NCBI GenBank assembly: GCA_002104905.1
Contig: MCFE01000751.1
Location: forward strand, 1-39,313
Direction of reading: 5' to 3'
Source of the DNA: Basidiobolus meristosporus CBS 931.73
Lineage: Eukaryota; Fungi; Basidiobolomycota
DNA: 39,313 bases
Under the pieces are notes generated by a model, which ran no database searches, was not told where the DNA came from, and was given only the letters and a program-made list of their open reading frames with translations. A program made the position numbers and the translations under genes. Positions 2,949 to 39,313 of the stretch are shown piece after piece; position 1 is the first letter of the stretch, and the number at the start of each line of letters is the position of its first letter.

Positions 2949-3085
2949 TGTTGTAAGAGTCTTGGAGATATTGGCAGTGGTTTGGAGGACAAGTAGATTA
3001 AGTGGTTTTCACTTAATGATTTATTGAATGTAAAACTAGTATTTATACTTTTACCTGGTGTTGGCATTACAAACACGTAGAATAG
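2949..3085 (-). repeat. Truncated copy of the C1 LTR
   Basis: Direct repeat of 780-915 (TGTTGTAAGAGTCTTGGAGATATTGG...), then homology stops. Confidence 0.8.
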
Positions 3086-4065
3086 GCTAAGGCTGCCAAT
3101 AAACTGAATCTCCTCAGATATTCAATGTATGCTCTAACCCCACTCTGGAATGACTAAATAGTAGAGCTTCTGCTTCCTGCTAAGCACACCATTCCTTGGC
3201 TTCCTATAAGCTGTAGTACATCCTAATCTCTGACAATCCTCTCCTCTATAAGCCAAGTCTGCCATACATTTCTCCCCTCTACTGAGTTCTGGATGATTCT
3301 CTACCCAGAGTGCTTTGCCATGCCTACTTCCAGCAAATGGCCCACTAAACCAGATGATGTTACCCTCAATGTCAGACAGTGCTTGAAACTTCACACAGTG
3401 TGCCTTGTACTTACCACAATAAAAGTGCCTCTGCCCTCTAGAAGGTCTGTTAATCCTGACTGGGAAGGTATCCAAAATACTCCTTATATGGAACTTGTTG
3501 CTGAACACTCTGGGATATAGAAGTCTATTGAAGCTTCTAAACCTAGTACTCCAAGCTTGCTCTAAGTCATTCATACCCTCTGCATGGTGGTTCTCCATTG
3601 CTGTCAGCTGGGAATGAAAGCTTCTAGGACTTTTGTTGCCATGTATGGTGGGATGAAACCTTGTAGGGTAATAGTTATTGTGATAGCAGAGAAACTTAAC
3701 AAGGGATCTCCTTGAGTAGATAGGGGTAGATGGACCACAGTACTTGGTATAGATCTCCTCTAGTGTGTCAAAAGGAAATCCAGTGGTAATGATGGGATTG
3801 ATGAGAAAAGACCATTCAGATGAGTAAGTCATATTCAAATTGGTAATGATTGGGCTGAACTGATTTGATTTGATTTGGCGCAATCAGCTTTATTTATCTC
3901 ATTTTCCATGCATTGTGACTAAATCTCCATCAATTGCCATGTATCCCATCATTATGTTGCAAAAATCATCCTCAAACAATGACTGGGTTTTTGTTTTGAT
4001 GCTTTACTCACAAGTCTATAATCAAATAGGAAATCTGCAATTGATGTGATCTGATCCATGTCAAT
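3085..4065 (-). pseudogene. PIF/Harbinger-like (DDE_Tnp_4 family) transposase pseudogene, copy 1
   Basis: ORF 3134-3883: ILDTFPVRINRP...YCGKYKAHCVKFQALSD...FSGPFAGSRH...MADLAYRG...YRKPRNG matches the DDE_Tnp_4 layout. The frame continues upstream through stops to about 4065. Homologous to 24535-25400. Confidence 0.8.
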
Positions 4066-4454
4066 GCAATCCAAGATGCATCATGCTTAATATATGGAAA
4101 ATTCAACAATCACATTAGTTTTCATATATATTTCACTTAAGGCCAGGTTGATGCCAATACACCACCGTATAAGTATCCAAATCTGTCACTATGGTCCCTA
4201 TAACAAGTCTCAACTCATCTTTAGCTCAACCTAGACAAAACCCATCCCCCTGTTCACAAGCATGGTCCAGACCAGAAAAAGCAATGTTGGATCTGCTTGA
4301 GTTCTTACCAAATGATATCAGTATGGCCCAAGTGTCTCTGATGAGCCTTCATACAGATATTTGGGCACTCAGTACTCTAGCAGAACTAGATACCTTGGAG
4401 AGTCAAAAGAGATGGAAGAACCTCAGTAGAAATGTAGTTTGAATCAGAAAAGGT

Positions 4455-5359
4455 TGTGGCCTTCTGTTGATAACCCTTTATATACAGGCACACCTGCAGC
4501 AATTGACATAATTTTATTACCACAGCCTTACGGCCATTTTGTGTTATACATGCAAAGTTACCGTATACCTTGTATTGCTGGTAGCATTTATATCTTGCAT
4601 ATGTATGATTAGTTGCTGCTACTTTTGCCATGAATAGCTCTTTAATATCTGCAAAATACTTTTATCTGCCTTGCCTTTATATTTCTTATCTCTACTGGAT
4701 ACTAGTCCCCCTTATAGGTGCACTTTGATTCTTGTTTGTACGAACTACAAGCTGCAGGGTGTACAAATTGACTGATAAAAAATGGAAACCTGGCATACTT
4801 TGGTAAAGTTGCCCTACTCAAAACTAGTTGCCAATTACATCCAACCTAATATTTCATTACCTAACTGATTACTCACACATTGGGCTGCTTGACTTCTTAA
4901 TGCCAATGACAAAGGTGTCTTCAAGTGCTTATGACATCTCAGTATTTTCCAACTATTACTGGCTGTACTCACTGTGTCAACTTATCACATCCACAACAGA
5001 CTTGAAGATTGTATTCTGACAAGATTATGATAAGGAGATAATTGCAATTAGGCTTGTCTTCCTATCAGCCCACACACTTTATCATTAGTAAAGAGATAGT
5101 GTTGTAGAGCAAATGCATTGCTTTCAGTGGAAAGCTTTTGCTCCAGCAGAGTCCCACTGTCTTTGATTTCTTCAATTTTGATTTGTCTAATATTCTGGTC
5201 TATGGCTTATAGAGTGCTAGCTTTGTGACAATTGCCTGTTGACTACTATATGTTCTTGCTGTGAGAGAATGATGTTCTTAGTGTTGATGTATATATAACA
5301 AAAACATGTCTGGATTGTGGAGTAAATCCCATGGTTCTCACACATTCAACAGCATAGAC
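4455..5359 (-). pseudogene. CACTA/En-Spm-like (tnp2 family) transposase remnant, internally deleted
   Basis: SFPLKAMHLLYN motif. 4935-5080 matches 21255-21395, 5085-5355 matches 21855-22140, and 4455-4830 matches 29945-30325. Cut at 5360 by a copia LTR. Confidence 0.7.
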
Positions 5360-22214: not shown

Positions 22215-23510
22215 TGTAGTGGTGTATAATGCCGATGGAGAGATACATCTAAAACTCTTTGAGTGTATTGGGCATGTAGTGTGTTCAATCTGTGCAATAG
22301 CCATTTGCAAAAGCCTGCTAGGAATACATGGGTCTTGCCTCTACTCTTTTGTAAAGGGGAATAAAGCCACAAGCTTGTCAAGGGAAACTGTTGCACTGCA
22401 GTTTCCAACTTATTTGGCATGTTGACAAAAGTATGTGCTGGGGCTGGCATCCTTTGAGATGACAATGTACTAAAGCTTCCAATGTCAAAGCCACTGTAAA
22501 CTCCACCAGCAGGGACTTGATAAAAATGCAGCTGTGGTTGCTAGTTACAAAGACAGCAAAGTATCTTTGCATGTACAAGAACAAACTTGGGAAAGAATCA
22601 AATATAATAAAAGATACCAACTCTGAGTATTCCTCAAAAGTTGTGCCTCTAAGGTCAGTTAGCTGTCAACGTGGTTTCCTAGGAGTGTTGTGTGGTCTGG
22701 GGTTGGAAGTTCAGGTAGCAGCTGGTAGCAGTGATCACATTAATCCACAAGTTGGTATATTGATAAAAGGGATGATGATGTATTGTTGTGGGATTGTCAC
22801 CCTCATATGCTTTTCTCACTGGCTAAGTGATTACTAATCATGGTGTTCCAGATGTCAATAGAAATCTTAATGACATCAGAATAAGCTGTGAGCTTACTAA
22901 GTAGGTGCTGGAAGGTTCTAAGAGGCACAGCACATCCAACCAATCAGGAATCAGTACTCTGAAACCTGTGTAACACATGGATACCATATATAGTATGGAA
23001 ATGGTAGGGATGGTGACACTGGTTGCTCATGTGTCACAGGTACTGATGTGGGTACTTGCCAAATATAGAAGTACTTACAGCTAGTAATCTTACATAAAGT
23101 GAGGGGTAGCTAATGCAATGAGGTAAGCATGTGTGATAGTCTACCGGCTTATGAGATATTACTGATCAGGTAAAACAAATGGGATAAAACTAAAACATAA
23201 GCACAGTTTCCTGGAAGTGGCCTGTGGTCTGAGATTGGCAGTTCAGATAGCAGCAGGTAGCAATGATCACTCTAATCAACAAGTTGCAATATTGATAAAG
23301 GGATGATGATTTATGATTGAGGAATTGCTTCCCTTCAAAACTTTCTGTGCCGGCAAAGTGACACCACCTCCAGTGTTCCAGAAGGTTCTCTAGCTCATTA
23401 GAAATCATGATGACATCAAAATGAGTTATGCATGTTCTGAGTATATGCCCAAACATTCTAAGACACACAGCATGTCCAAGCAATCAGGGGTCAGTATATA
23501 AAGCTTGTGT
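22215..23510 (-). repeat. Older diverged LTR related to the young gypsy LTR, with an internal duplication
   Basis: 22215-22800 aligns with the reverse complement of 31510-32071 and ends ...TATACACCACTACA. 22675-22970 is repeated at 23205-23510. Confidence 0.8.
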
Positions 23511-24050: not shown

Positions 24051-24534
24051 GACTTCTTCCATTGGATAGTGCCACATAATGCTGGCCTGTTTAAAGTATC
24101 AGCTTTATCTGTCACTCTATGGCACTACCTGGCATTCTAATCTCATTATGCCAGTGGTAGAATATAGTTACTGGAATTTTTACTCAATCCTGCTTATGTT
24201 GCTCAGAAAAGTGCTTTTCTTGCTTTACTTATTCTTTGTAATGCTCCGGACATGTTTCTCTCAGTAGAAGTCTTCTTGTAGGAAATATACTGTACTTTAA
24301 AAATATCTTGACTTTTTTACCTATTCTGCTGTTTTCTCCTATATATGACTTTCCTCTGTATTTTCCTGCTAATATGCTGAATCTCTTAAGATATCCAAGT
24401 GTTTGCTCTGCTCTCATGCTGAAGTGATTAACATCTCATTGTAGTGCTTCTGCTAAGCACAACATTCCTTAGATTCTTATAAGATGTAATACATTCTACT
24501 CCCTGACAATTCTCTCCTACTTAAACTAATTCCA

Positions 24535-25700
24535 ACAAATATTTCTTCCCTCTGCTGAACTCTGGATGATTCTCTACCCAGAGTGCTTTACTATGCCTAC
24601 TTCCAGCAAATGGCCCACCGAACCAGATGATGCTACCCTCAATGTCAGAGGGTGCTTGCAACTTAACACAGTCTGTCTTGTACTTGCCCAAGTAAAAGTG
24701 CTACTGCCCTCTATAAGGTCTGCTAAACCTGACTGGAATGATATCCAAGATACTCCTGTTATGGAACCTGTTGCTGAGTACTCAGGTATTTGGAAGTCTA
24801 TGGGAGCTTCAGAACCTAGCAGTCCAAGCTTGCTGTAAGTTGTTTATACCCTCTCCAAGGTGGTTCTCCATAACTGTTAGCTGAGAATGAAAGCTTCTAG
24901 GACTTCTGTTACCATGAATGGTGGGATGAAATCTTGTAGGGCTCTTGTTCCTGTAATAGCAGACAAGCTTAACATGGGACCTCCTTGAGTAGATTAGGGT
25001 AGATGGTTCACATTGCTTGTTATTGATCACCTCCAATGTGTCAAAAGGAAATCTAATGGTAATGTTATGATTGATGAGAAAAGTCCATTCAGATTAGCAA
25101 GTCATATCAAGATTGGTATGTGATTGAGTAGAAGCAATATGGATTGATTTGGAGCAATCAGCTTAATTCATCCAATTTTCCATGCATTACTATCAAATCT
25201 CCATCAAGTGCCATATATCCCATCATAATGTTACAAATATTAACCTCAAACAATGACTTAGTGATTTTGTGGATGATTTACTCAGAAGTCTATAATCCAG
25301 AAGTGAATCTGCAATTGATGCAATATGATCCATGTCAATGCAATATGTTACGTATACTGCATATTATATGAAAAATTCAACAATCACATTAGTTTTCATA
25401 TATATTTCATATAAGACCAGGTTGATGCAAATATACTACTGAACAACTATCAAAATCCATCACTATGGTCCCTATAGCAAGTCCAAAGTCATCATCAGTA
25501 CAACATAGACAAAACCCATCCCCAGTTTGCAAGCACAGTCCAGACTGGAAAAATCAATGCTGCATCCATTCAAGTTCTTGCCAAGTGACTTTAGTATGGC
25601 CCAAGAGTCTGTGATGAGCTCTCATACAGATATTTGAGCACTATTCATTAATCCAGCAGAACTGGATACCTCAGAGAGTCAACAGAGGTAGAAGTATTGG
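24535..25700 (-). pseudogene. PIF/Harbinger-like transposase pseudogene, copy 2, with upstream region
   Basis: Collinear with 3260-4420 in the same orientation (the 24566 and 3293 ORFs are homologous; YSRRSHVKLVCY...PTRFHPTIHGNRSPRSFHSQL). Confidence 0.8.
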
Positions 25701-27359
25701 AGTAGAAAGCTGTGGCATGAGTTCTACATCAAGATGCCAGCAGATGTATTTAAGTAGACATATAACAAGACAAGTAGTTGAATCCAGAATGAGCTGAGAG
25801 TGAGGGTGTTTGATGGGGAAGCTTTGTGCAATCAATTCCTAGCACAATTTGCACTGTACAGGCTGGATGCATCTGTTTATGCCTCAACTTTGGGAGCCAA
25901 AGAGATTTTGAATGAGTTTTTACCTCAAGTGGCTAATGTACCACATGTTATATTAGTGGAGCTGAGTGGCTTCCAAGAGCTATACACACAGGACTCATTA
26001 ATGCAACAGTTTAAAGTATCAGAGAGAGGGTAAGTGAGTACCTTGAGGAATCAGAAGGTGAGCTTCAGGAGGATGCATAGAGACCATAAGCAACTGTGTC
26101 AAGATTGTGCCAGAATGCCTTGCTGGATTCTTTACCATCCCCTGCAATGTTAGCATGCCAGTACAGGTCAGTCCTATCTATGTCAACACCCTTCACAAGA
26201 GCACCCTGCATCAATTCAATGCACACCACATCAACATGAACACTTCAGTATAAATTACCAGAACTCACCATTCTGCTCATGTAGACACAATTCCATTGGA
26301 GCAGGCCAAGTTGCATCAACATGTAACATCACATCAAACTCAGCCAAGGGCTGTGCCAACACATCAAGTTGCAACTGCACATGTCAGTACACCTGAACAT
26401 TGGCAAGTTACTTCTGGTGAACTGACTGAAGATGACCCACATGAAGTGCCTCCATCACCAGAACCTTTGGCAAGTAAAGAACACATCAGCACATGGCACT
26501 TTATGCTGTTTCTATTATATCATCTGGAGCAATTCAGTGCAGCCAAGCTCCTGCATTGCACTCAGCAACTAGGAAGCAAAATACTGACTACAAGTACACA
26601 AGTAGCCAAGATGATAGTCAACTAGGAAGTAGTTCAGGTGTGCAGAGTGAGTCACTACTAAATACATCAATAGTAATCCCTATGAGTAAAAACCTAGGAG
26701 AAGATGATGCAATTGCATTGAATTGTTACCATTTGGCATGGACCAAATAATGCATTTTTTTGTAATCCAAATTGAACTATTGCAGATCAGTGATCACTTG
26801 TTTTTTTGTTATAAGCTATGTTGAGGTGATCTCACATTTGAGATACAGCCTTTATGATAAGCTCACTGCATATGAATACAGCATCTGTAAACCAGTGCAG
26901 CTATTTGATCTGATTTGCACTTGCACAATTGGTTGCATGCTTGCTACGATGCCACATCTACTTGCAAGGATGAGGGCCTTACTTGCTCAATGAGCAAAAT
27001 TGGATATTTGATGGCAAATCAGATAGCTTGTGTATTGGTCAATAAGCCAATTGGTGGCTAAGAGCTTCAGGATACTTTTAGACCAATCAGCTATTAACAT
27101 TCCATCCAATTGGAGGGATGGTAACCATAATGGTAAGTAACATTGTAATTGATAGTGTGATACACATTTATTTCTGTTTGCCTTAAAGAAACATCTCCAA
27201 GTACTGTATTTTATCTACCACAATAATGGTATCCAATTGCGCATATGACGCAAACATTACAAGCAGGCACAATTGTCTATGCCAACCTGATTGTGACAAG
27301 CTGTACTATAGTGTGCAGAATGGTTCAAGAGCAATCTTCTAATGGTAGAATTATTATTT

Positions 27360-29480
27360 TTTGCAGCTGCAAATTGACTCTGGAGCATCTCAACACTTTG
27401 CACAAGAATAAGAATGTTTTACCCAATTTCAAGAAAATGCAATTAAGAAGGTTTTCATGGGTGACAATAGAACAATTCATGAACTAGGAGAAGGGAGTAT
27501 CCAAGAAAACCTTAGAAGTTGTGAAGGGAACTATACACGGACTTTTGAAGAAGTTTGCCATGTACCAGAGAAAGCCATGAACCTACTATCTATAAGCAAG
27601 CCCACAGCCAAAGGATACAGTTTCAGCTTTGCTAATTCTGGATGCATGATCACTAATCCAAATGGTGCCCATCTTGCTTTGGGTATCAGGGATTGGAACC
27701 TGTAATATTTGACATATATGCCATCATATCTGGAAGCCATTATAAGTAACTTGAATGAAGGAACACCAATGCTTTGGCACAGGAGATTTGAGCATATCAA
27801 TTTGATCATTTGTGCAAAATGATCATGGATCAGCTAATTTCTGAAGTAAAAACTGCTCCGTAGCTAATTTAGAGTACTGTGAAGCCTGAATACATAGAAA
27901 AAAAGCCAGACTACCATTCAAGACCTCTAGATTAGTCAATACTAAGTAAAAATTAGATCAAATACACTCAGACCTTTGCAGACCTATTCAAAGCCTGTCC
28001 TTTGGTGGGATGTGGCATTTACTCACTATTATTGATGATTATACAAAATACACTTGGGTTTACATCATTGAGAGAAAGGATGATGCTCTGTCTAGGCTTA
28101 GGGAGTCTATAGCCATGGTGGACAGAGAAACTGGTGAAAAAATCAACAAAATACACTCTGACAATGGTAGAGAATAGACTTGTTCCGTTGGGCAGTGCCA
28201 CATTGAGCCATGAGTGCCAAATGATGCCATAGTGTGCCAGACAGGCCAAGTGAGCCTCTAGCTGGCCACAGAGTGTGAAACATAGCTTTGCATCTTCATG
28301 CAAAGCAGCCCCTGTGTTTCACCCATTGTGTAGGAGAAAATCCATTTTTTGACCTTTTTTTTTGGATCAATGTTGTGCAGGATGTGTTGGAGCACAAAAG
28401 AATTGAAGATATGCATCTGGTACTCAATACCCATGGCACTCTGAATCTAGCTCCTGTAGCTTGTATCATGTCACAAAAATGAATGGCACCATCTTGGTCC
28501 ACTGGTACTATCTGGCACTATAAGTGCTTTATATTGATCTTACTTTAGGTCTAATATTTAAATATAGTGCCAGATAGTACCAGTGGACCAAGATAGTGCC
28601 ATTCATTTTTGTGACATGATACAAGCTACAGGAGCTAGATTCAGAGTGCCATGGGTATTGAGTACCAGACGCATATCTTTAGTTCTCCTGTGCTCTTACA
28701 CATCCTGAGCTACATTGATCCACAAAAAAAGGTCAAAAAATGGATTTTCTCCTGCGCAATGGGTGAAACACAGGGGCTGCTTTACATGAAGATGCAGAGC
28801 TATGTTTCACACTCTGTGGCCAAGTATAGGCTCACTTTACCTCTCTGGCACACTATGGCATCATTTGGCACTCATGGCTCAATGTGGCACTATCCAACAG
28901 AACAAGTCTAATATACAGCAAAAAAAAGACTTCATATTTGAACAGAAAACTTAATGAGGATGTGTATACAAATCAGCCTGATGGGTGTGCTGACCAAAAT
29001 AACCCCCATTTGGTCTTCAAACTTAAAAAAACTCAATATGGACTCAAACAATTGCCAAAAGCCTTGAACTGCAAAATGAATCTTATTTGGCATCCTTGAA
29101 TTTCATAAGGAGTAATGCTAATTATAGTATGTGCTATAAGCCAGATAGAGCAAGTTCAGTTCTATTAGGTTTATATATGGATGATCTTATTATAGCCACC
29201 AATAACTTAGAAATTTTGGAAGAGACTAGCTCCAGCCTATCTAATGTGCTCTAGATGTCCAATCTAGGAGAACTCAACTACAACTTGAGGATAGGGTTTT
29301 CCATATATAGGAGTATGCAGACCATCACCCTAAGTGTATCCAATTATTTATAAGATATACCAAAGAAGTACCAGACGGAAGACTGTAAACTGTCAGCTAC
29401 CCAAATGGAGACAAGCCTTATCATATGAAAAATGAAATGGTCCATTGGTGGAACAAATCCAGGTCAGCTGTCAAGATCCT
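27360..29480 (+). mobile_element. Copia C1 pol remnant (PR, IN, partial RT), interrupted by the foldback element and internally deleted
   Basis: IDSGASQHF, LWHRRFEHI, IHSDLC, IDDYTKYTW, SDNGREY, then KTSYLN...QPDG, YGLKQ, LYMDDLII. Confidence 0.9.
28176..28909. mobile_element. Non-coding foldback (palindromic) element, copy 1, 734 bp
   Basis: 347-bp inverted arms starting AGACTTGTTC around a 40-bp loop (28523-28562). TSD AAT/AAT. Removing the element and one TSD restores the integrase motif DNGREYTAK. Confidence 0.95.
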
Positions 29481-29944
29481 ATTAGGAGACTCTCAAAATA
29501 CCAACAGCTTGGAACAAATGACCATTCTCACAATCTTATGACATGTTCACAACAGCATGTAGCTAATTTTAGTGCCAAATAAAGTTAAAAAGCATAATGG
29601 TGTTTAAGCAGTGTTCTACCAAGGGTGGCATGGCATTGTTGTGGTCTCAGTGTGCTCTTCAACTATGTGAGTGGATTTAACTGGCCAGTATATCCAATTG
29701 CCTTATCTGGTAAAAACTTGATGGTGTTTTGATGACCTCATTCTAAGCCTCTGATGGTATTATGACGGTGGCATGGTGGCCAACAGCTAGTTCTGCATAA
29801 TGCTACCATGCCAATTTACCAAATGGTGTTCCCTTTTCTATGCCCCCTTGCATAATTCATATACTCTGCTGTAGAATCACCCATCATTTTTGCTTACCCA
29901 CTACTATCTTGGGCATTCCACATATAGCTCAACTCAAAAAATAA

Positions 29945-30325
29945 TATGACCTCCTGCTTACTAACCTCTACAAACAGGCACACCTGCCACAATTGTCATA
30001 CTTCTATTACCTCAACTTTAAGGCTTTTTAGCTCAATACTTGCAAAGCTGCCTTATACCTTGAATTGCTGGAAGCATATACATCTTTCAAACATATGCTT
30101 GATTGCCACCACTTCTGCCATGAACACCTCCTGAATATCTGCAAAGAACTCTTTAGTATTTAGCTAACATGTTCCTTCTCTCTGATGAGCTCTAGTTCCC
30201 CTTATTGATGTGCTCTGGCTCTTGTTTGTGTTAATATTGTATTGAATGATGTAGCAGTTGGCTTGTGACCAAGAGATATCTGGCATACCTTGATAGAGCT
30301 TTCCCAATAAAAGTTAGTTGCATGA
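29945..30325 (-). pseudogene. C-terminal fragment of the CACTA-like transposase family
   Basis: Homologous to 4455-4830, which lies downstream of the tnp2 core in that copy. Reads EFFADIQEVFMAEVVAIKHMF...EVIEV. Confidence 0.6.
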
Positions 30326-30333
30326 TGTACCCA

Positions 30334-30637
30334 ACCCAGGAATTTTGATTGGAGCTCATCAACAACAGACTTGGATTTGAGATCCCAGATCTTGATGCAG
30401 CATGAGGCAAAAGCACAGAGCCAGTATCTGCTGAGGCTGAAGACCAGAGTGGTAACTTATATCACTAGCCTCCAAGGAGTAAAGGTGCTTGCTGTTGTTG
30501 AGATCCCATAACATGACAACAATATCCTTACCAGCAGTAGTGCAAAGGGAACCATTAGGAGAGATGGAAGCAGTGTTGATGTAACTGGTGTGGCCAATGT
30601 GGTTGGTGCAGATCTTGCTCTTGCAGAGATCCCAGAC
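30334..30637 (-). pseudogene. RACK1: RACK1/Asc1 (G-beta-like WD40) gene fragment: one exon with a 1-bp frameshift
   Basis: After ...TTTAG reads [60 protein letters not shown], then +1 nt, [39 protein letters not shown]. This matches RACK1 GHTGYIN...SPDGSLCASGGKD...WDLNEGKHLY...FSPNRYWLCA...KIWDL...VDEL. Confidence 0.95.
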
Positions 30638-30710
30638 CTAAAGTAGAAAAATGCAGGTGAATGTTGCAGGCTAGGAGAGAAGTGGATTGGATGTGGGAAG
30701 AAGGGTAGGT

Positions 30711-30782
30711 AATTAGAATATAATGATTGTTTGTCTCATAGCAAGTTACTCTGAAGTAACAAGTATTTTGAAACATCATGTA
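30711..30782 (-). ncRNA. snR24: Degenerate U24 (snR24/SNORD24) box C/D snoRNA in the captured RACK1 intron
   Basis: Box C ATGATGT, guide ATACTTGTTACTT with box D' CAGA, box C' ATGAGAC, decayed second guide and box D (CTAA). Recalled yeast U24 has ATGATGT...ATATTTGCTACTTCAGA...ATGAGACA. It lies in the intron at the ASC1-equivalent position. Confidence 0.8.
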
Positions 30783-30833
30783 ACCCCATGAATCTTCCCT
30801 CTGTTCTGGAGAAATACCTGACCCTAAGTAGCT

Positions 30834-30992
30834 CTGCAAAGGTTCTGAATTGCCTACACAGCTGAGAGCCTGAGGAGTCTGCATTATTACCTTCAATGGG
30901 CACACTGTCCACAGGGCCTTTTTTGGATGTAGCCCTGCTTGTTGTACTGAGTGTCAAAGCAAGCTGTTGTCCAAACATTCTTCTGTTGCCAT
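30834..30992. repeat. Unit of a degenerate ~159-bp tandem repeat, left of the gypsy
   Basis: Aligns with 38184-38255 plus 38992-39077 once the foldback is removed. Confidence 0.8.
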
Positions 30993-32071
30993 TGTAGTGG
31001 GGTCACAGTGACACCCACAGGCAGATGTGCTCATTCTTATGCGTTCACTTCCCTAAAAAGGATTACCCCGCCTATATTATTATCATCCCAAATTTGCAAT
31101 ATTTCCTATTTTTGTCTATGTGATTATTACTATGCAACCTGACAAACTATTTGTCACTATTAACCCATTGCACAAGCTATTCTTATTCCTTGCCGAGATG
31201 CCAAGATAAGATAGTTACCTTATAAGGCATGTACCCCAACAGTGCCCATGTCACGCGACCATCTTGGTTTCATAATCCCCCATCTCACTACCATAAGAGG
31301 CAACCACATGACACAGAGGTTTCATGTTACCACTACCTGATTGGCTAGGTGCTACTATGTCTCATGGAACAATCCGCCAAGAGTTTGCGCTATTTTTAGT
31401 ACACAAAGACATGATTGGTTGTCTACTACCTTCTGGAAACTTCCGGAAAGTATTTTCTAGCAAGAAATTGAGCAGCAAAAAAGTATATAAGGGAGGCTAT
31501 CCCTTAAAATAAATCATCCCTCTTCCAATATTCCGACTTATTGATTAGTGAGATCACCGCTACCTATTACCACTATTTTCTGACTCAGACCTGACAACAC
31601 TCCCAGGAAACCGCGCTGACAGCCAACTGACCTTGGAGGCACTACTTGTGAGGAATACTCAGAGTAGGTATATTTTATTATATTTGTTTGTTTTCCCAAG
31701 TTTGTTCTTGTACAGGCAAAGATACTTTTCAGTCTTTGTAACTATTGGTCAAAGCTGCATTCTTATCAAGTCCCTGTTGGTGGAGTTTACAGTTGTTTTG
31801 ACTTTGGAAGCTTTAGTACATTGTCATCTCAAAGGACGTCAAAGCCATTATAAACTTTTGTTAAGACGCCAACTAAGTTGGGGATTGTAGTTCAATAGTT
31901 TTCCCTTGACAAGCTTGAGGCTTTATCCCCCATCACATTAGATTAGACAAAAGACCCAGTATTCCTAGCAAGCTTTTGCCAGAGGTTATCGCACCCAGTG
32001 AACACCCCACACACATTCACACTTGAGAAGTGTTGGCCGTATTTTGCCCTTTGGACTTATACACCACCACA
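30993..32071 (+). repeat. 5' LTR of G3
   Basis: Differs from the 3' LTR by 3 C/T substitutions and 6 single-base homopolymer indels. Confidence 0.98.
31484..31490 (+). promoter_or_regulatory. Possible LTR TATA box
   Basis: TATATAA in mid-LTR, with AATAAA about 20 bp downstream. Motif only. Confidence 0.3.
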
Positions 32072-32075
32072 TAAT

Positions 32076-32092
32076 TGGCACCCAACGTGGGG
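32076..32092 (+). other. PBS complementary to tRNA-Lys(CUU)
   Basis: TGGCACCCAACGTGGGG versus the canonical Lys1,2 PBS TGGCGCCCAACGTGGGG (one CpG-type change), 4 nt after the LTR. Confidence 0.85.
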
Positions 32093-32212
32093 GGGTTCAT
32101 ACAAGCTCCCTAGGACCCAACAAGATTTACCTGAAGATTTGAGCCGTTACCCATTTATTGAAACAAGACTACCGATATTATCAAGACTATAACACCAACC
32201 TACCTACCAAAA

Positions 32213-34063
32213 ATGAACTCTATGCCGTTACCACTCTCACATGGAGCCCCACAGTTTGATGGAAAGAATGTGGAGAGCTTCATATTCAAATGGGAGAAGC
32301 TCTGCAAGATGTGCAGCCTATCTGAACAAGAAATGGCTGAAGACTTCCCCTACTACTGCACCGATGATATTACTACTAAGCTTCTCAGACAAGGAGACAT
32401 TCTGACTGACTGGACCTCAATGAAGACCTACCTTCAGACCGAGTATGGCAGACCCCAGATATACTATGGAATTGAGGACCTCAGACACTTTGGAAGGATG
32501 GGACTCTCCAAGCTACCACTTGAAGAGTTCATTCAACAATATGAAGATATGGCCAAGCCACTCCTAGAGTCCCAGGCAATAACTGAGTTTACCATGACAC
32601 TTTACCTTGCACAAGGGCTTCCCCAGGAGCTGGCAAGGAAAGTTGACCTACATGCAGCCAAGGATGACAAGTCTGGCATTCCTTGCTTTGCAGAGATGAA
32701 ACGTGTACTCCTAGAGGCAAAGCAAACTTCTACCTTTATGAGACTCCTGACATCTAATCTGCCAGACCAGCCAACCAAGGAGCTAAAGAGTGCTGTTGCT
32801 GACAATCAGACCTACACTACCGACAGAATTGACCAACTTGCTGAACAGCTACAAAAGCTAGCCCTCAAGGTTAACGGCTCAGCTGAGGTAGCTACTGAGG
32901 GCCAAAGAGCTTTGCCTAGACACTGCATTTGGTGTGACTCTACTCAGCATGCCAGACGTGAATGCTCAGAGCTTAGCCAGCTACTTAGAGAAGGAACAGT
33001 ACAGTTTGATGCTGATGGAATGCTTGCTGATAAGGAAGGAAAAAGGATTCCCACTAATTTCCAAAGAGGTGGAATGAGAGCCCTTTTCCAGAAGTCTGAC
33101 TCAGCAACTAGAAAGATTACTGTTGATGCCCCTATTGAGACTCATACAGTGAGTCCAAACAGCCCTGACAACAGAAAATACGAAGTAGACACCTTTGCTA
33201 CTAAGAGACACCTTCCTGAAGAACCTGTCAAGCCCATCCTTAGAAGACCACGATTTGAAGAACCTGAGGTTATCATTGACAAGAGGCCTGGAACACTGCC
33301 CACCCAAGACCCATTACCTCACTTTCAGATGACCTCAAAGATAGCAGGCTACTCAAGCCCCCAATTGATTACGGAGAAATTGTTGAAGCAGAACCTCACT
33401 TTGTCAGTTGGAGAAATCATGAGTGTATCACCGTCTGTTAGGAAGACCTTTGATGAGCAGCTTAGAACAAGAAGACAAGCTGTTGAACATATGGACACCC
33501 ATATAATCCAGACAAACCATGAAGACCACAAAAAGGGTGACACCACTACCAAATACAAGACGTTTTACTCAGTTGCAACTGCTGTGGTGAAAGGGTACAT
33601 ATATGATGACCCTGTTGACTGCCATATTGACAGTGGTTCAGAGATTTGTGTTATGCCGCTAGACTTCTGGAAGACACTTAGAAGCAAGGAGCTACTGCCT
33701 GTTGATAGAGATATTGGATGGAACATGACTGATGCAAACTCAGGGTCTAGCCCACTCTATGGTGTAGTGCACAAGTTCCCTATTGAGGTACAAGGAATCA
33801 AGGTCTGGCTTCCCCTCTTTATCTGCCAGAAGGCAAACTTTGACCTTCTGTTAGGCAGACCATGGGAGACCAGTACTAAGGCTACAACTACCAACTATTC
33901 TGATGGGTCAGTGTGGTACACTATACAAGGATCCAACCCAGGACTACAGTCAACATTCTGTGGGGTAACACCCAACAATAAGAGGACACATACCGCTTGC
34001 CAGAAGACACATCTTGTTATAGAAGAAGATGAGGAGCCTGACAGTATACACCCTAACAGTTAG
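32213..34063 (+). CDS. Gypsy Gag plus aspartic protease (616 aa)
   Basis: APQFDGKNVESF, CIWCDSTQHARREC zinc knuckle, HIDSGSEIC protease, FDLLLGRPW. Confidence 0.9.
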   Translation: MNSMPLPLSHGAPQFDGKNVESFIFKWEKLCKMCSLSEQEMAEDFPYYCTDDITTKLLRQGDILTDWTSMKTYLQTEYGRPQIYYGIEDLRHFGRMGLSKLPLEEFIQQYEDMAKPLLESQAITEFTMTLYLAQGLPQELARKVDLHAAKDDKSGIPCFAEMKRVLLEAKQTSTFMRLLTSNLPDQPTKELKSAVADNQTYTTDRIDQLAEQLQKLALKVNGSAEVATEGQRALPRHCIWCDSTQHARRECSELSQLLREGTVQFDADGMLADKEGKRIPTNFQRGGMRALFQKSDSATRKITVDAPIETHTVSPNSPDNRKYEVDTFATKRHLPEEPVKPILRRPRFEEPEVIIDKRPGTLPTQDPLPHFQMTSKIAGYSSPQLITEKLLKQNLTLSVGEIMSVSPSVRKTFDEQLRTRRQAVEHMDTHIIQTNHEDHKKGDTTTKYKTFYSVATAVVKGYIYDDPVDCHIDSGSEICVMPLDFWKTLRSKELLPVDRDIGWNMTDANSGSSPLYGVVHKFPIEVQGIKVWLPLFICQKANFDLLLGRPWETSTKATTTNYSDGSVWYTIQGSNPGLQSTFCGVTPNNKRTHTACQKTHLVIEEDEEPDSIHPNS

Positions 34064-34342
34064 AGCTGCTCATTAGGTATACAAGAGCAGTCAGCTATGG
34101 TTTGCACAAAATACAAGACAGTGGAACAGAAGATTAGACCATCACTTACGCCTTTAACTGATGGGTCTTGACCTGCTGATTACATCAGACCACCAGAAGG
34201 AACACCAGAAGATATACGACTTACACCTGAGAGACTTAAGCAACTTATCATTGGTGATGGAAACCTAACACCGGAGGAGATCTTACTATTTGAAGAAACC
34301 CTGAAAAGGCATGATAAGGTTTTCTCATATAATGACAAGGAG

Positions 34343-36274
34343 ATGGGACTCTTAAAGACATCGGTTGAAAAACCTACCAAAATTCATACAGTGCCCCACA
34401 CACCCTGGTCATTTAAACCCTACCCACTGCCTAGAGGACTCCAAGCTGATGTGCATGACCTACTTAAGAAGAAGATTGAAGCTGGTATCCTAGAACCTTG
34501 CCATGGACCTTATGCTAACAGATGGTTTGTGACCAAAAAGAAGAATGGGAAGCTCCGATTCATTCAGGACATGCAACCTGCAAATGCTGTCACTATCAGA
34601 GATGCCGCAATACCTCCGTCTACTGATGACTTTGCAGAAAGCTTTAGTGGTCACTCCATCTACTCAACATATGATCTCTACTCAGGATACGACCAGATTC
34701 CCCTAGATGAGACATCAAGAGATATGTTTGCACTCCAGACACCATTTGGACTGTTAAGAATGACAAGACTTAGCCAAGGGGCAACAAACTCCGTGGCTCA
34801 GTTCCAGAGGTGCATGGTAAATGTGCTCTACCGGTTTATACCTGAGAAACTTGCTGTCTTTGTTGATGACATAGGCATCAAAGGACCAAAACTCCGGGAC
34901 ACAACTGAAGTTATGCCTGGAGTAAGAAAGTTTGTCTATGACCATATTTCAGACAATGATGCCATATTAGGAGCCATTGAAGAATCTGGACTCACCATCA
35001 GTGGTGAGAAAAGCAGCTTTGGTGTATCAGAGATATCCATTGTTGGACAAAAATGCAACACCTTTGGTCATTCACCCGGAGACTCCAAGACACAAAAGAT
35101 ATGCAACTGGCCTACCCCCACAAATCTAACACAAGCTCGTGGCTTTGTGGCAGCTTGTGGGTTCTTTAGGATCTGGATCCCAAGATTTTCTGAGATAGCA
35201 GAACCAATCTACCAACTACAGAGAAAGAATGCCCCATTTAACTGGGGAGAAGAGCAAGAAGAAGCCATGCAATTACTAAAAGAGGCCTTAGTATCTCCAC
35301 CAGTTCTGAGACCTCTTGACTATCAGAACACTGAATGCCCACCTATCTTGACGGTGAATGCAAGCCCTGTAGGAGCTGGAGCACTACTTGGCCAAGATGA
35401 TGAAGATGGTAACCGCTATGCCTGCAGATATGAGAGCTGCCTCTTCTCTCCTAGAGAACAAAGATACTCACAGATTAAGAGAGAGCTACTAGGAGTTGTG
35501 AAGATGCTGAGAAAGCTGAAGTCACAACTCTACATGACACATTTCATCCTGGAGACAGATGCTAAGCCACTTATAGGAATGATCAACAAGCCTGATCTAC
35601 CTGATGATGCCACAAATCGGTGGATGGCATGGCTGAAAATGTTTGACTTTGAGGTCAGACATATCCCTGGCAAGACAAATGTTGTGGCTGATGCACTCTC
35701 CAGGAAGGGACCACAGTTGTCTGAAGATATGGACCCTGACTTTGATGACATATTTGATGCAGAAATCCGACAACTACACGTGAAGAAGCCCAGCAACTCT
35801 ACATGGAACACCATTCAAGACTATCTGAGAACCTTAGAGAAGCCACCAGGAATGAGCCCACATGATTTCAGAAAGCTCAGGAAGAAGGCCCATCATTTCT
35901 ACATAAAAGACGGCCTCCTCTTCAAACAAGTAAAGCCTGGACAGACACCAAGAAGAGTTATAGTTGAGCCCCAGGAACAACTGACTATTATGTCAAGCCT
36001 TCATGAAGGAAGACCCAGTGGTCATAGAGGCAGAGATGCCACTTACAATGTTGTTTCCAGTAGATACTACTGGGAGCATATGTATCATGATGTCCAACAC
36101 TTTGTTGAATCTTGTGACATTTGCCAAAGAAGGTCAACCAAGAGATATGAGGAGCCGCTCCATCCAACCTACACACCTTGTCTATGGCAGAAGGTTGGCA
36201 TTGACCTGGTCCACATGCCAACTGCTGGAACCAAGAAGTACCTTGTTGTTGCCAGAGATGATCTGAGTGGGTAG
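34343..36274 (+). CDS. Gypsy RT-RNase H-integrase N-part, in frame with gag; ends at a premature TAG
   Basis: YSTYDLYSGYDQ, LSQGATNS, VFVDD, RNase H with D replaced by N (TVNAS), LHEGRPSGHRG...CDIC, GIDLVHMP. Confidence 0.92.
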   Translation: MGLLKTSVEKPTKIHTVPHTPWSFKPYPLPRGLQADVHDLLKKKIEAGILEPCHGPYANRWFVTKKKNGKLRFIQDMQPANAVTIRDAAIPPSTDDFAESFSGHSIYSTYDLYSGYDQIPLDETSRDMFALQTPFGLLRMTRLSQGATNSVAQFQRCMVNVLYRFIPEKLAVFVDDIGIKGPKLRDTTEVMPGVRKFVYDHISDNDAILGAIEESGLTISGEKSSFGVSEISIVGQKCNTFGHSPGDSKTQKICNWPTPTNLTQARGFVAACGFFRIWIPRFSEIAEPIYQLQRKNAPFNWGEEQEEAMQLLKEALVSPPVLRPLDYQNTECPPILTVNASPVGAGALLGQDDEDGNRYACRYESCLFSPREQRYSQIKRELLGVVKMLRKLKSQLYMTHFILETDAKPLIGMINKPDLPDDATNRWMAWLKMFDFEVRHIPGKTNVVADALSRKGPQLSEDMDPDFDDIFDAEIRQLHVKKPSNSTWNTIQDYLRTLEKPPGMSPHDFRKLRKKAHHFYIKDGLLFKQVKPGQTPRRVIVEPQEQLTIMSSLHEGRPSGHRGRDATYNVVSSRYYWEHMYHDVQHFVESCDICQRRSTKRYEEPLHPTYTPCLWQKVGIDLVHMPTAGTKKYLVVARDDLSG

Positions 36275-37065
36275 GTAGAAGCTCAAGCCCTACCCAATAA
36301 CAAAAGCCACACCATATGGAGATTTATTCTTGAAGATATAATATGCAGATTTGGCTGCATCAGCCAGTTTGTTGCTGACCGAGGAGAACTGACCTCAAAT
36401 TTGATCCAGGAACTCTGCTCACAATACAAGATTCATATTGCTTTCACTACCGCTTATCACCCACAGGCCAATGGAATGGTTGAAAGAGGCCATGGCCCGT
36501 TAGTTAACTCCCTGGTCAAGAGCTGCAACAACACAACACTACAGTGGCCTACACAACTTCATCTAGCACTCTGGGCAGATAGAATCACTACAAAGCGCAG
36601 CACAGGTCTATCTCATTCAAATTGCTTTACGGACATGATTGCGTTCTTCCCATAGAGCTTGACTCAATATCCTGGAACATGCTAGAGTGGAGAACTACAA
36701 TGAGTACAGAAGAACTACTGACTACACGCATCAAACAGCTTGATCACCATGAACTTGATATTACCCAAGCAGCTGCTAAACTCAAAGAGACAAGACTTCA
36801 GAACAAGGAACCATTTGACAAGTCACATAGCCTTAGACCAAAGCCATTACTGCAAGGAGATCCAGTACTGCTCTATGATTCCACTTTAGACAAGCAGTGG
36901 AGTTGCAAATTTGACAATAAGTGGTCTGGCCCATATATGGTCTCTAAGGTGATTGGAAATGGAAGCTACTACCTGTCTGAACTTGATGGAACACCGCTAA
37001 GAGCACCTGTGGCAGGAAACCGACTTAAGCTATTCAAGCACCGGAATTTCGCACATCACATTTAG
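36275..37065 (+). pseudogene. Integrase core and C-terminus, split by a stop and a 1-bp frameshift
   Basis: VADRGE, TAYHPQANGMVERGH, a frameshift near 36612, YGHDCVLP, KWSGPY. Confidence 0.9.
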
Positions 37066-37090
37066 TTTGCTTTGACCTGAGTTCAAAGCT

Positions 37091-37104
37091 GAGAGGGGGG
37101 TGGA
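37091..37104 (+). other. Polypurine tract of G3
   Basis: GAGAGGGGGGTGGA immediately before the 3' LTR. Confidence 0.9.
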
Positions 37105-38183
37105 TGTAGTGGGGTCACAGTGACACCCACAGGCAGATGTGCTCATTCTTATGCGTTCACTTCCCTAAAAAGGATTACCCCGCCTATATTATTATCATCC
37201 CAAATTTGCAATATTTCCTATTTTTGTCTATGTGATTATTACTATGCAACCTGACAAACTATTTGTCACTATTAACCCATTGCACAAGCTATTCTTATTC
37301 CTTGCCGAGATGCCAAGATAAGATAGTTACCTTATAAGGCATGTACCCAACAGTGCCCATGTCACGCGACCATCTTGGTTTCATAATCCCCCATCTCACT
37401 ACCATAAGAGGCAACCACATGACACAGAGGTTTCATGTTACCACTACCTGATTGCTAGGTGCTACTATGTCTCATGGAACAATCCGCCAAGAGTTTGCGC
37501 TATTTTTAGTACACAAAGACATGATTGGTTGTCTACTACCTTCTGGAAACTTCCGGAAAGTATTTTCTAGCAAGAAATTGAGCAGCAAAAAAAGTATATA
37601 AGGGAGGCTATCCCTTAAAAATAAATCATCCTCTTCCAATATTTCCGACTTATTGATTAGTGAGATCACCGCTACCTATTACCACTATTTTCTGACTCAG
37701 ACCTGACAACACTCCCAGGAAACCGCGCTGACAGCCAACTGACCTTGGAGGCACTACTTGTGAGGAATACTCAGAGTAGGTATATTTTATTATATTTGTT
37801 TGTTTTCCCAAGTTTGTTCTTGTACAGGCAAAGATACTTTTCAGTCTTTGTAACTATTGGTCAAAGCTGCATTCTTATCAAGTCCCTGTTGGTGGAGTTT
37901 ACAGTTGTTTTGACTTTGGAAGCTTTAGTACATTGTCATCTCAAAGGACGTCAAAGCCATTATAAACTTTTGTTAAGACGCCAACTAAGTTGGGGATTGT
38001 AGTTCAATAGTTTTCCCTTGACAAGCTTGAGGCTTTATCCCCCATCACATTAGATTAGATAAAAGACCCAGTATTCCTAGCAAGCTTTTGCCAGAGGTTA
38101 TCGCACCCAGTGAACACCCCACACACATTCACACTTGAGAAGTGTTGGTTGTATTTTGCCCTTTGGACTTATACACCACCACA
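37105..38183 (+). repeat. 3' LTR of G3
   Basis: Direct repeat of 30993-32071. Confidence 0.98.
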
Positions 38184-39120
38184 CCGCAATGATTTTCAAC
38201 TGCCTACTTGACTGAGAGCCTGAGGTGTTGTATTATTACCTTTAGTGGGCACTATAGACTTGTTCCGTTGGATAGTGCCACATTGAGCCATGAGTACCAA
38301 ATGATGCCATAGTGTGCCAGAGAGGCCAATATAGCCTCCACCTGGCCACAGAGTGTGAAACATAGCTCTGCATCCTCATGCAAAGCAGCCCCTGTGTTTC
38401 ACCCATTGTGTTGGAGAAAATCCATTTTTTGACCTTTTTTTTGGATCAATATTGTGCAGGATGTATTAGAGCACCAGCAGATTGAAGATATGCATCTGGT
38501 ACTCAATACCCTTGGCACTCTGAATCTAGCTCCTGTAGCTTGTATCATGTCACAAAAATGAATGGCACTATCTTGGTCCACTGGTACTATCTGGCACTAT
38601 ATTTAAATATTAGCCCTAAAGTAAGATCTATACAAAGCACTTATAGTGCCAGATAGTACCAGTGGACCAAGATAGTGCCATTCATTTTTGTGACATGATA
38701 CAAGCTACAGGAGCTAGATTCAGAGTGCCATGGGTATTGAGTACCAGATGCATATTGTCAGTTCTACTGTGCTCTTACACATCCTGAGCTACATTGATCC
38801 ACAAAAAAAGGTCAAAAAATGGATTTTCTCCTGTGCAATGGGTGAAATACAGGGGCTGCTTTACATGAAGATGCAGAGCTATGTTTCACACTCTGTGGCC
38901 AAGTATAGGCTCACTTGACCTCTCTGGCACACTATGGCATCATTTGGCACTCATGGCTCAATGTGGGACTATCCAACAGAACAAGTCTTATGTCCACAGG
39001 GCTTTTTTTGGTTGTAGCCCTGCATATTGTACTGAATATCAAAGCAAGCTGTTGTCCAACCATTCTTCTGCTGCTGTCAGCAGGGGGTTTAGTTGGGAAC
39101 CAGATGATTATGCATTATTT
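38184..39120. repeat. Continuation of the ~159-bp degenerate tandem repeat, split by foldback copy 2
   Basis: Homologous to 30834-30992. A third partial unit start appears near 39092-39120. Confidence 0.7.
38256..38988. mobile_element. Non-coding foldback element, copy 2, 733 bp
   Basis: Arms 346/347 bp, loop 38602-38641, TSD TAT/TAT. The empty site GGGCACTATGTCC has the same length as the paralogous GGGCACACTGTCC at 30898-30910. Confidence 0.95.
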
Positions 39121-39313
39121 CTTGGCAGCATATACATCAAAGTGAGTCATACCAAAGGGAAAATGGTGTAATATGTATATGTGTAAGTGGTGCCACAACA
39201 TTACTTGTAATGCTTACTATGACAGATCAACATTTCATCTTACATTCATGTAGGTGTAATGTTTCGATTGGAAAACTGTCTTGAATTCACATGAGTATTG
39301 ACAAAAATACAAT

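Follow-up and report, generated by a model that had tools for sequence, protein, structure and literature searches.

The window analysed here is one whole contig of 39,313 bases with a G+C content of approximately 40%, in which part of a RACK1 gene abuts a transposon-derived repeat family (repeat H). The contig is full of nested repeats, identified by Pfam and self-BLAST: copia gag, integrase and RT pieces, two gypsy-type elements, a PIF/Harbinger transposase in two copies, and 734-base foldbacks. The features that bear on the RACK1 locus are as follows:

3085..4858, minus strand: repeat H copy A, uninterrupted (self-BLAST, Pfam, BLASTP)
24232..25708, minus strand: remainder of repeat H copy B, with the decayed gene of a PIF/Harbinger-type DDE transposase (80% identical to 3093-4432)
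25709..29921, no strand assigned: other repeats, a 4.2-kb block interrupting copy B (self-BLAST, junction alignments)
29897..30336, minus strand: start of repeat H copy B (71% identical to 4858-4432)
30337..30637, minus strand: RACK1 exon relic (phmmer against PDB, tblastn with P0002-P0009, translations)
30638..30690, minus strand: splice-acceptor-like tail, pyrimidine-rich and ending in TAG, directly upstream of the RACK1 exon
30691..30835, no strand assigned: spacer, unique within the contig (self-BLAST, Pfam, PDB, Rfam)
30993..38183, plus strand: gypsy-type LTR retrotransposon (self-BLAST, Pfam on ORFs, LTR ends)

The RACK1 exon noticed in a first-pass annotation of this DNA is real, occupying 30637-30337 of the minus strand according to both phmmer searches of the PDB and tblastn. 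The translation of 30637-30461 (59 residues) is collinear with RACK1 residues 176-234 by phmmer, its best quoted match being Cryptococcus Gib2 (E 1.6e-30), with further matches to human/mammalian, plant and yeast RACK1/Asc1 chains; residues 237-278 are matched by 30456-30337 in another frame (E 3e-9), the two frame pieces having been queried separately and never as a joined or mended reading. The same limits (30637 to 30334/30340) are given by tblastn with eight partial RACK1 proteins (P0002-P0009, each extending to the C-terminus), to which the relic is 60-74% identical. It spans approximately codons 176-278 of about 315 (about 300 bases, about 102 codons), and over residues 176-278 the match is collinear and specific to RACK1, not to generic WD40 proteins. 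Pfam searches with ten frame pieces around the junction yielded only WD40-type matches, and these on the RACK1 pieces only. The tblastn queries, which represent the C-terminal half of RACK1, detected no further RACK1 exon in the contig.

A single inserted base at 30457 throws the exon out of frame, and there is no in-frame stop inside either frame piece. The homologue consensus residue is found at 68 of 100 positions, and 12 of the 58 columns at which all eight homologues agree are altered (for example, SPDG to SPNG and GGKDG to AGKDI), with G>A the commonest inferred single-step change. Because of the insertion and the changes at invariant columns, the RACK1 piece is evidently a dead relic. 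A complete seven-blade RACK1 reading frame is absent, the sequence amounting to about 102 codons with the frameshift at 30457; only about two blades of the seven-bladed propeller are encoded, and the relic, being frameshifted and drifting without constraint, is predicted to be without protein function.

At its upstream edge, RACK1 homology opens at the first base after the splice-acceptor-like sequence TTTTTCTACTTTAG, bearing out the earlier description of an intron acceptor at a conserved position. In the homologue ORFs P0002-P0005, which come from short contigs, unrelated sequence runs through Q or K (cag/aag) directly into VWEL; therefore, an intron position just before that valine is common among them. 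The pyrimidine-rich tail (30638-30690), for which no protein match was found, is presumably the 3' end of the RACK1 intron that preceded the exon, kept in the copy. A resemblance of the acceptor-proximal translation ..FSPSLQHSP.. to ..FSPN.QNP.. of RACK1 was tested and was unsupported. The spacer (30691-30835) has no coding similarity (Pfam, PDB), no repeat similarity within the contig (self-BLAST), and no match to the flanks of either copy of repeat H, and no snoRNA was found by Rfam in the presumed intron. No RACK1 or WD40 similarity was detected by Pfam or PDB searches in the 355 bases upstream of the exon, as far as the gypsy LTR at 30993, or in the long open frame 38935-39114, the sole one tested in 38184-39313. 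A DNA-level copy, not a processed retrocopy, is supported by the exact start at a common exon boundary, the acceptor-like tail, and the lack of RACK1 coding sequence upstream. The segment 30638-30835 would be native RACK1 intron, and an intact RACK1 gene presumably resides elsewhere in the genome. Thus, of the first-pass proposal of DNA-level capture as opposed to retroposition, the DNA-level origin is upheld by the exon boundary and the acceptor-like tail, but capture is not.

The gypsy-type element (30993-38183), with LTRs of 1079 bases that are 99.2% identical, forms the edge of the locus, 355 bases from the RACK1 exon on its upstream side. This young element has no short target duplication (its flanks are GCCAT and CCGCA) and lies between direct copies of a 155-base sequence, 79-90% identical (30836-30989; 38186-38252 plus 38991-39074), the right-hand one split by a 734-base foldback; the direct copies could be due to insertion into a tandem duplicate or to a recombinant element. 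An inverted partial copy of the gypsy LTR (22215-22814, 79% identical) was left by a related, older element, as a solo LTR or a truncated one.

On its other side the relic adjoins repeat H. The uninterrupted copy A includes a 91-codon open module (4661-4389) and a 249-codon Harbinger transposase ORF (3883-3137) that contains a DDE_Tnp_4 domain (PF13359, E 8e-11 by Pfam) and is 58% identical to P0010, a complete Harbinger-type transposase of 294 residues (8.6e-23 against PF13359); a word search with the Harbinger ORF returned one relative only. Copy B is collinear with copy A in two parts (30350-29922 and 25708-24232) on either side of the 4.2-kb block, inside which are a 734-base foldback (28176-28910) and a copia fragment (28925-29420). 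The start of copy B consists of approximately 170 bases conserved at the DNA level only, followed by a decayed coding module with two stops (30163-29897), and the C-terminal ...LKRFSIL... of its transposase remnant is found also in P0010. In both copies, the module is located on the same strand as, and upstream of, the PIF/Harbinger-type DDE transposase. The neighbour of the RACK1 relic is therefore transposon-derived, but its description as a CACTA transposase remnant is not supported: no Tnp2 domain was found in the pieces scanned, and the adjoining transposase is PIF/Harbinger (PF13359).

Copies A and B are 78-91% identical in the transposase part and 59-74% identical in the module part, the 430 bases that touch RACK1. 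To judge from the alignments, the module may be an older, different element that lies beside the Harbinger element or was invaded by it. Between 3085-4858 and its counterpart (24358-25712 plus 29922-30350), identity drops from roughly 81% to roughly 70% at 4374-4432, and the drop coincides with the split in copy B; this points either to a pair of elements that differ in age or to a site favoured by insertions.

The module comprises about 90 residues with a conserved pattern (F-A-K/R-C-x-C ... V-E-L-C-Q-L ... F-F-D-S-x-Y-x-W-N) and is encoded by 4389-4661 in copy A and 29897-30163 in copy B, both on the minus strand. A search of all representative proteins identified two relatives, P0012 (141 residues, E 2e-5) and P0013 (74 residues, E 2e-4), and a third match, P0011, was dismissed as a tandem-repeat artefact; in pairwise BLASTP the values were 4e-14 for copy A and 1e-8 for the copy-B piece 29897-29995 against P0013. 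The module relatives P0012-P0015 are unnamed and have no Pfam family. No candidates came from a word search with the copy-A module ORF, and no family was assigned by Pfam, at E values up to 10, to pieces of 29897-30313 or to P0012 and P0013; the Transposase_21, DUF4216, DUF4218 and DUF6830 profiles matched none of the pieces scanned. A scan of genome and metagenome contigs with the module alignment yielded nothing, and a match in viral contigs (L001 3930-4097) is attributed to chance, being situated inside an 838-residue phage primase/helicase-like ORF. In a language-model look-up of P0012, the named clusters included six with DUF6830 (at least 0.9) and one with DUF4216 (0.82). DUF6830 and DUF4216 accompany Tnp2/CACTA-type transposases. 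The module is probably an unannotated transposon protein domain, and the CACTA label for the neighbour of RACK1, which derives only from this language-model resemblance, may be regarded as a weak lead.

RACK1 homology stops at ..DELQSKF (30340-30337), in an exon that runs on to the stop codon in most homologues, and similarity to repeat H opens on the same strand at 30336 (GGTTGG), or at 30350 in the loosest local alignment, leaving a gap of at most 4 bases. The bases 30350-30337 can be explained as RACK1 codons altered by transitions (RPE to QSK), and the junction is therefore sharp, to within about 4 bases. The first-pass annotation, which had RACK1 ending about 10 bp from CACTA homology on the same strand, was thus correct about a sharp same-strand junction, but its CACTA label is not supported; RACK1 and the transposon sequence, which it had called fused, are not joined in frame, the RACK1 frame being different from the conserved frame of the neighbouring module. 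The piece just past the junction was considered as a last RACK1 exon and rejected, having matched nothing in a PDB search. Both copies of repeat H open at the same base, which suggests that this is a real element end or that both descend from one truncated ancestor. The flanks of the common boundary are TTA in copy A and CTG in copy B, and searches there gave neither a matching inverted end nor a target duplication; likewise, no candidate matching end was found in a search for PIF-type terminal inverted repeats or a TWA duplication for H.

Such a junction might be produced by transduplication, with RACK1 as the cargo of a non-autonomous Pack-CACTA or Pack-Harbinger DNA transposon that has moved or is movable. 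This is highly unlikely, even though a host exon with an intron tail and coding sequence derived from a transposon directly adjoin each other on one strand, and though the look-alikes of the module by language model include DUF6830 and DUF4216 clusters. The adjoining transposase is of the Harbinger type, and no Tnp2 domain was found in the pieces scanned. A target-site duplication of 3 bp would be expected for CACTA and for PIF alike, but neither a target duplication nor surrounding inverted repeats nor CACTA ends were found: CACTA-type end motifs occur in the contig at chance level only, and when sequence past the transposase was compared with the boundary and with the upstream spacer, candidate inverted repeats scored no better than in shuffled sequence. 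At the second copy of repeat H, RACK1 is absent from the boundary flank by tblastn, so that RACK1 is not a cargo common to the H family copies of the contig. Bases 4988-5004 in the copy A flank match 30357-30373 of the RACK1 exon (codons KSKSVVD) at 16 of 17 positions, and this was rejected as a trace of RACK1 and taken as chance (p of approximately 0.02 by shuffling, in a small search, with no extension). Homology to repeat H does not resume in the contig beyond the RACK1 relic. Amplification is also unseen: the relic ORF (P0001) forms a 90% cluster of one member on one contig of the protein collection, in which other short ORFs reach 74% identity to it at most and no second copy was found, although decayed copies need not be called as ORFs.

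With copy A lacking RACK1, no repeat H beyond the relic, no bracketing ends, and P0001 standing alone, the available sequence does not support Pack-CACTA capture of RACK1 within the contig. Capture by a CACTA element, which the first-pass annotation had proposed, accordingly finds no counterpart in copy A or in any inverted repeats or bracketing CACTA ends; the annotation had itself held that a lack of CACTA ends around the piece would speak against capture, and none surround it within the contig. It is very unlikely that RACK1 is the cargo of an unrecognised Pack-type transposon with decayed or unusual ends and other copies elsewhere in the genome of this early-diverging fungus.

The locus is probably best explained as a single, dead, partial copy of RACK1 made at the DNA level, comprising an exon and the end of an intron, in a transposon-rich contig, and not as mobile-element cargo; the evidence that it is single covers the contig and the protein collection, not the whole genome. 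As to how the join arose, we infer that the RACK1 copy lost its 3' side where repeat H, consisting of the module and then the Harbinger-type transposase gene, now adjoins it, and that either H would have cut it on arriving or the cut would stem from a rearrangement or from a join made during repair. If H was inserted into a longer copy of RACK1, the last approximately 40 codons would be expected beyond the far end of H; they were undetectable there by tblastn, and that region has been overrun by other repeats. The start base common to both copies of H counts against this explanation, since it fits a true element end, but it is accompanied by no matching inverted end or duplication.

These observations are also accounted for, without mobility, by a single capture of filler DNA when a break was repaired. 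In this case, repair of a broken end of a truncated H copy would have involved template switching to the native gene, from which the RACK1 stretch was copied; the product would be a single chimeric junction, and the stretch would never have belonged to a larger RACK1 duplicate at this site. The piece is suitably short (about 300 coding bases and at most 200 bases upstream), its junction is sharp, RACK1 exon sequence from upstream and from downstream is absent from the contig alike, and the two similarities may overlap briefly at 30337-30350. However, transitions in the RACK1 consensus codons account for the overlapping bases, leaving microhomology unproven; on its other side the piece is flanked by unique sequence (30638-30835) of unassigned origin; and, without the native RACK1 locus, filler capture is indistinguishable from the decay of a larger duplicate. 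Filler capture is considered unlikely, and the RACK1 relic is most likely ordinary genomic debris.

If the RACK1 piece were real transposon cargo, it would be a rare fungal case in which a core ribosomal scaffold gene had undergone Pack-type shuffling, and RNAs overlapping RACK1 or antisense to it might arise from the piece. On the present evidence, it is a further decayed gene fragment among repeats, useful mainly as a caution that a sharp gene-to-transposon junction is by itself no proof of capture.

Comparison with known systems indicates where the locus fits. Pack-TYPE elements carry captured DNA between terminal inverted repeats, with target-site duplications (PMC8903248, PMC6379663). The locus is similar to Pack-MULE and Pack-CACTA elements in that a host gene fragment with intron sequence adjoins DNA-transposon sequence, but the relic lacks terminal repeats, a duplication, and transposon sequence on its second side, and the other copy of repeat H lacks the RACK1 fragment. 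Its likeness to CACTA/EnSpm (Tnp2) elements is limited to the language-model resemblance of the module relatives to DUF6830/DUF4216 clusters, whereas repeat H and its module have neither a Tnp2-associated profile match nor CACTA termini. Both copies of H share a DDE_Tnp_4 transposase gene with PIF/Harbinger elements, from which they differ in the absence of PIF-type inverted repeats and in having TTA beside the boundary in copy A only. Unprocessed partial pseudogenes differ from the relic in that one of its ends falls exactly at the base where a repeat family starts; in other respects it resembles them, keeping an intron boundary, covering part of the parent gene, being frameshifted with relaxed substitution at invariant residues, and lying among nested transposons.
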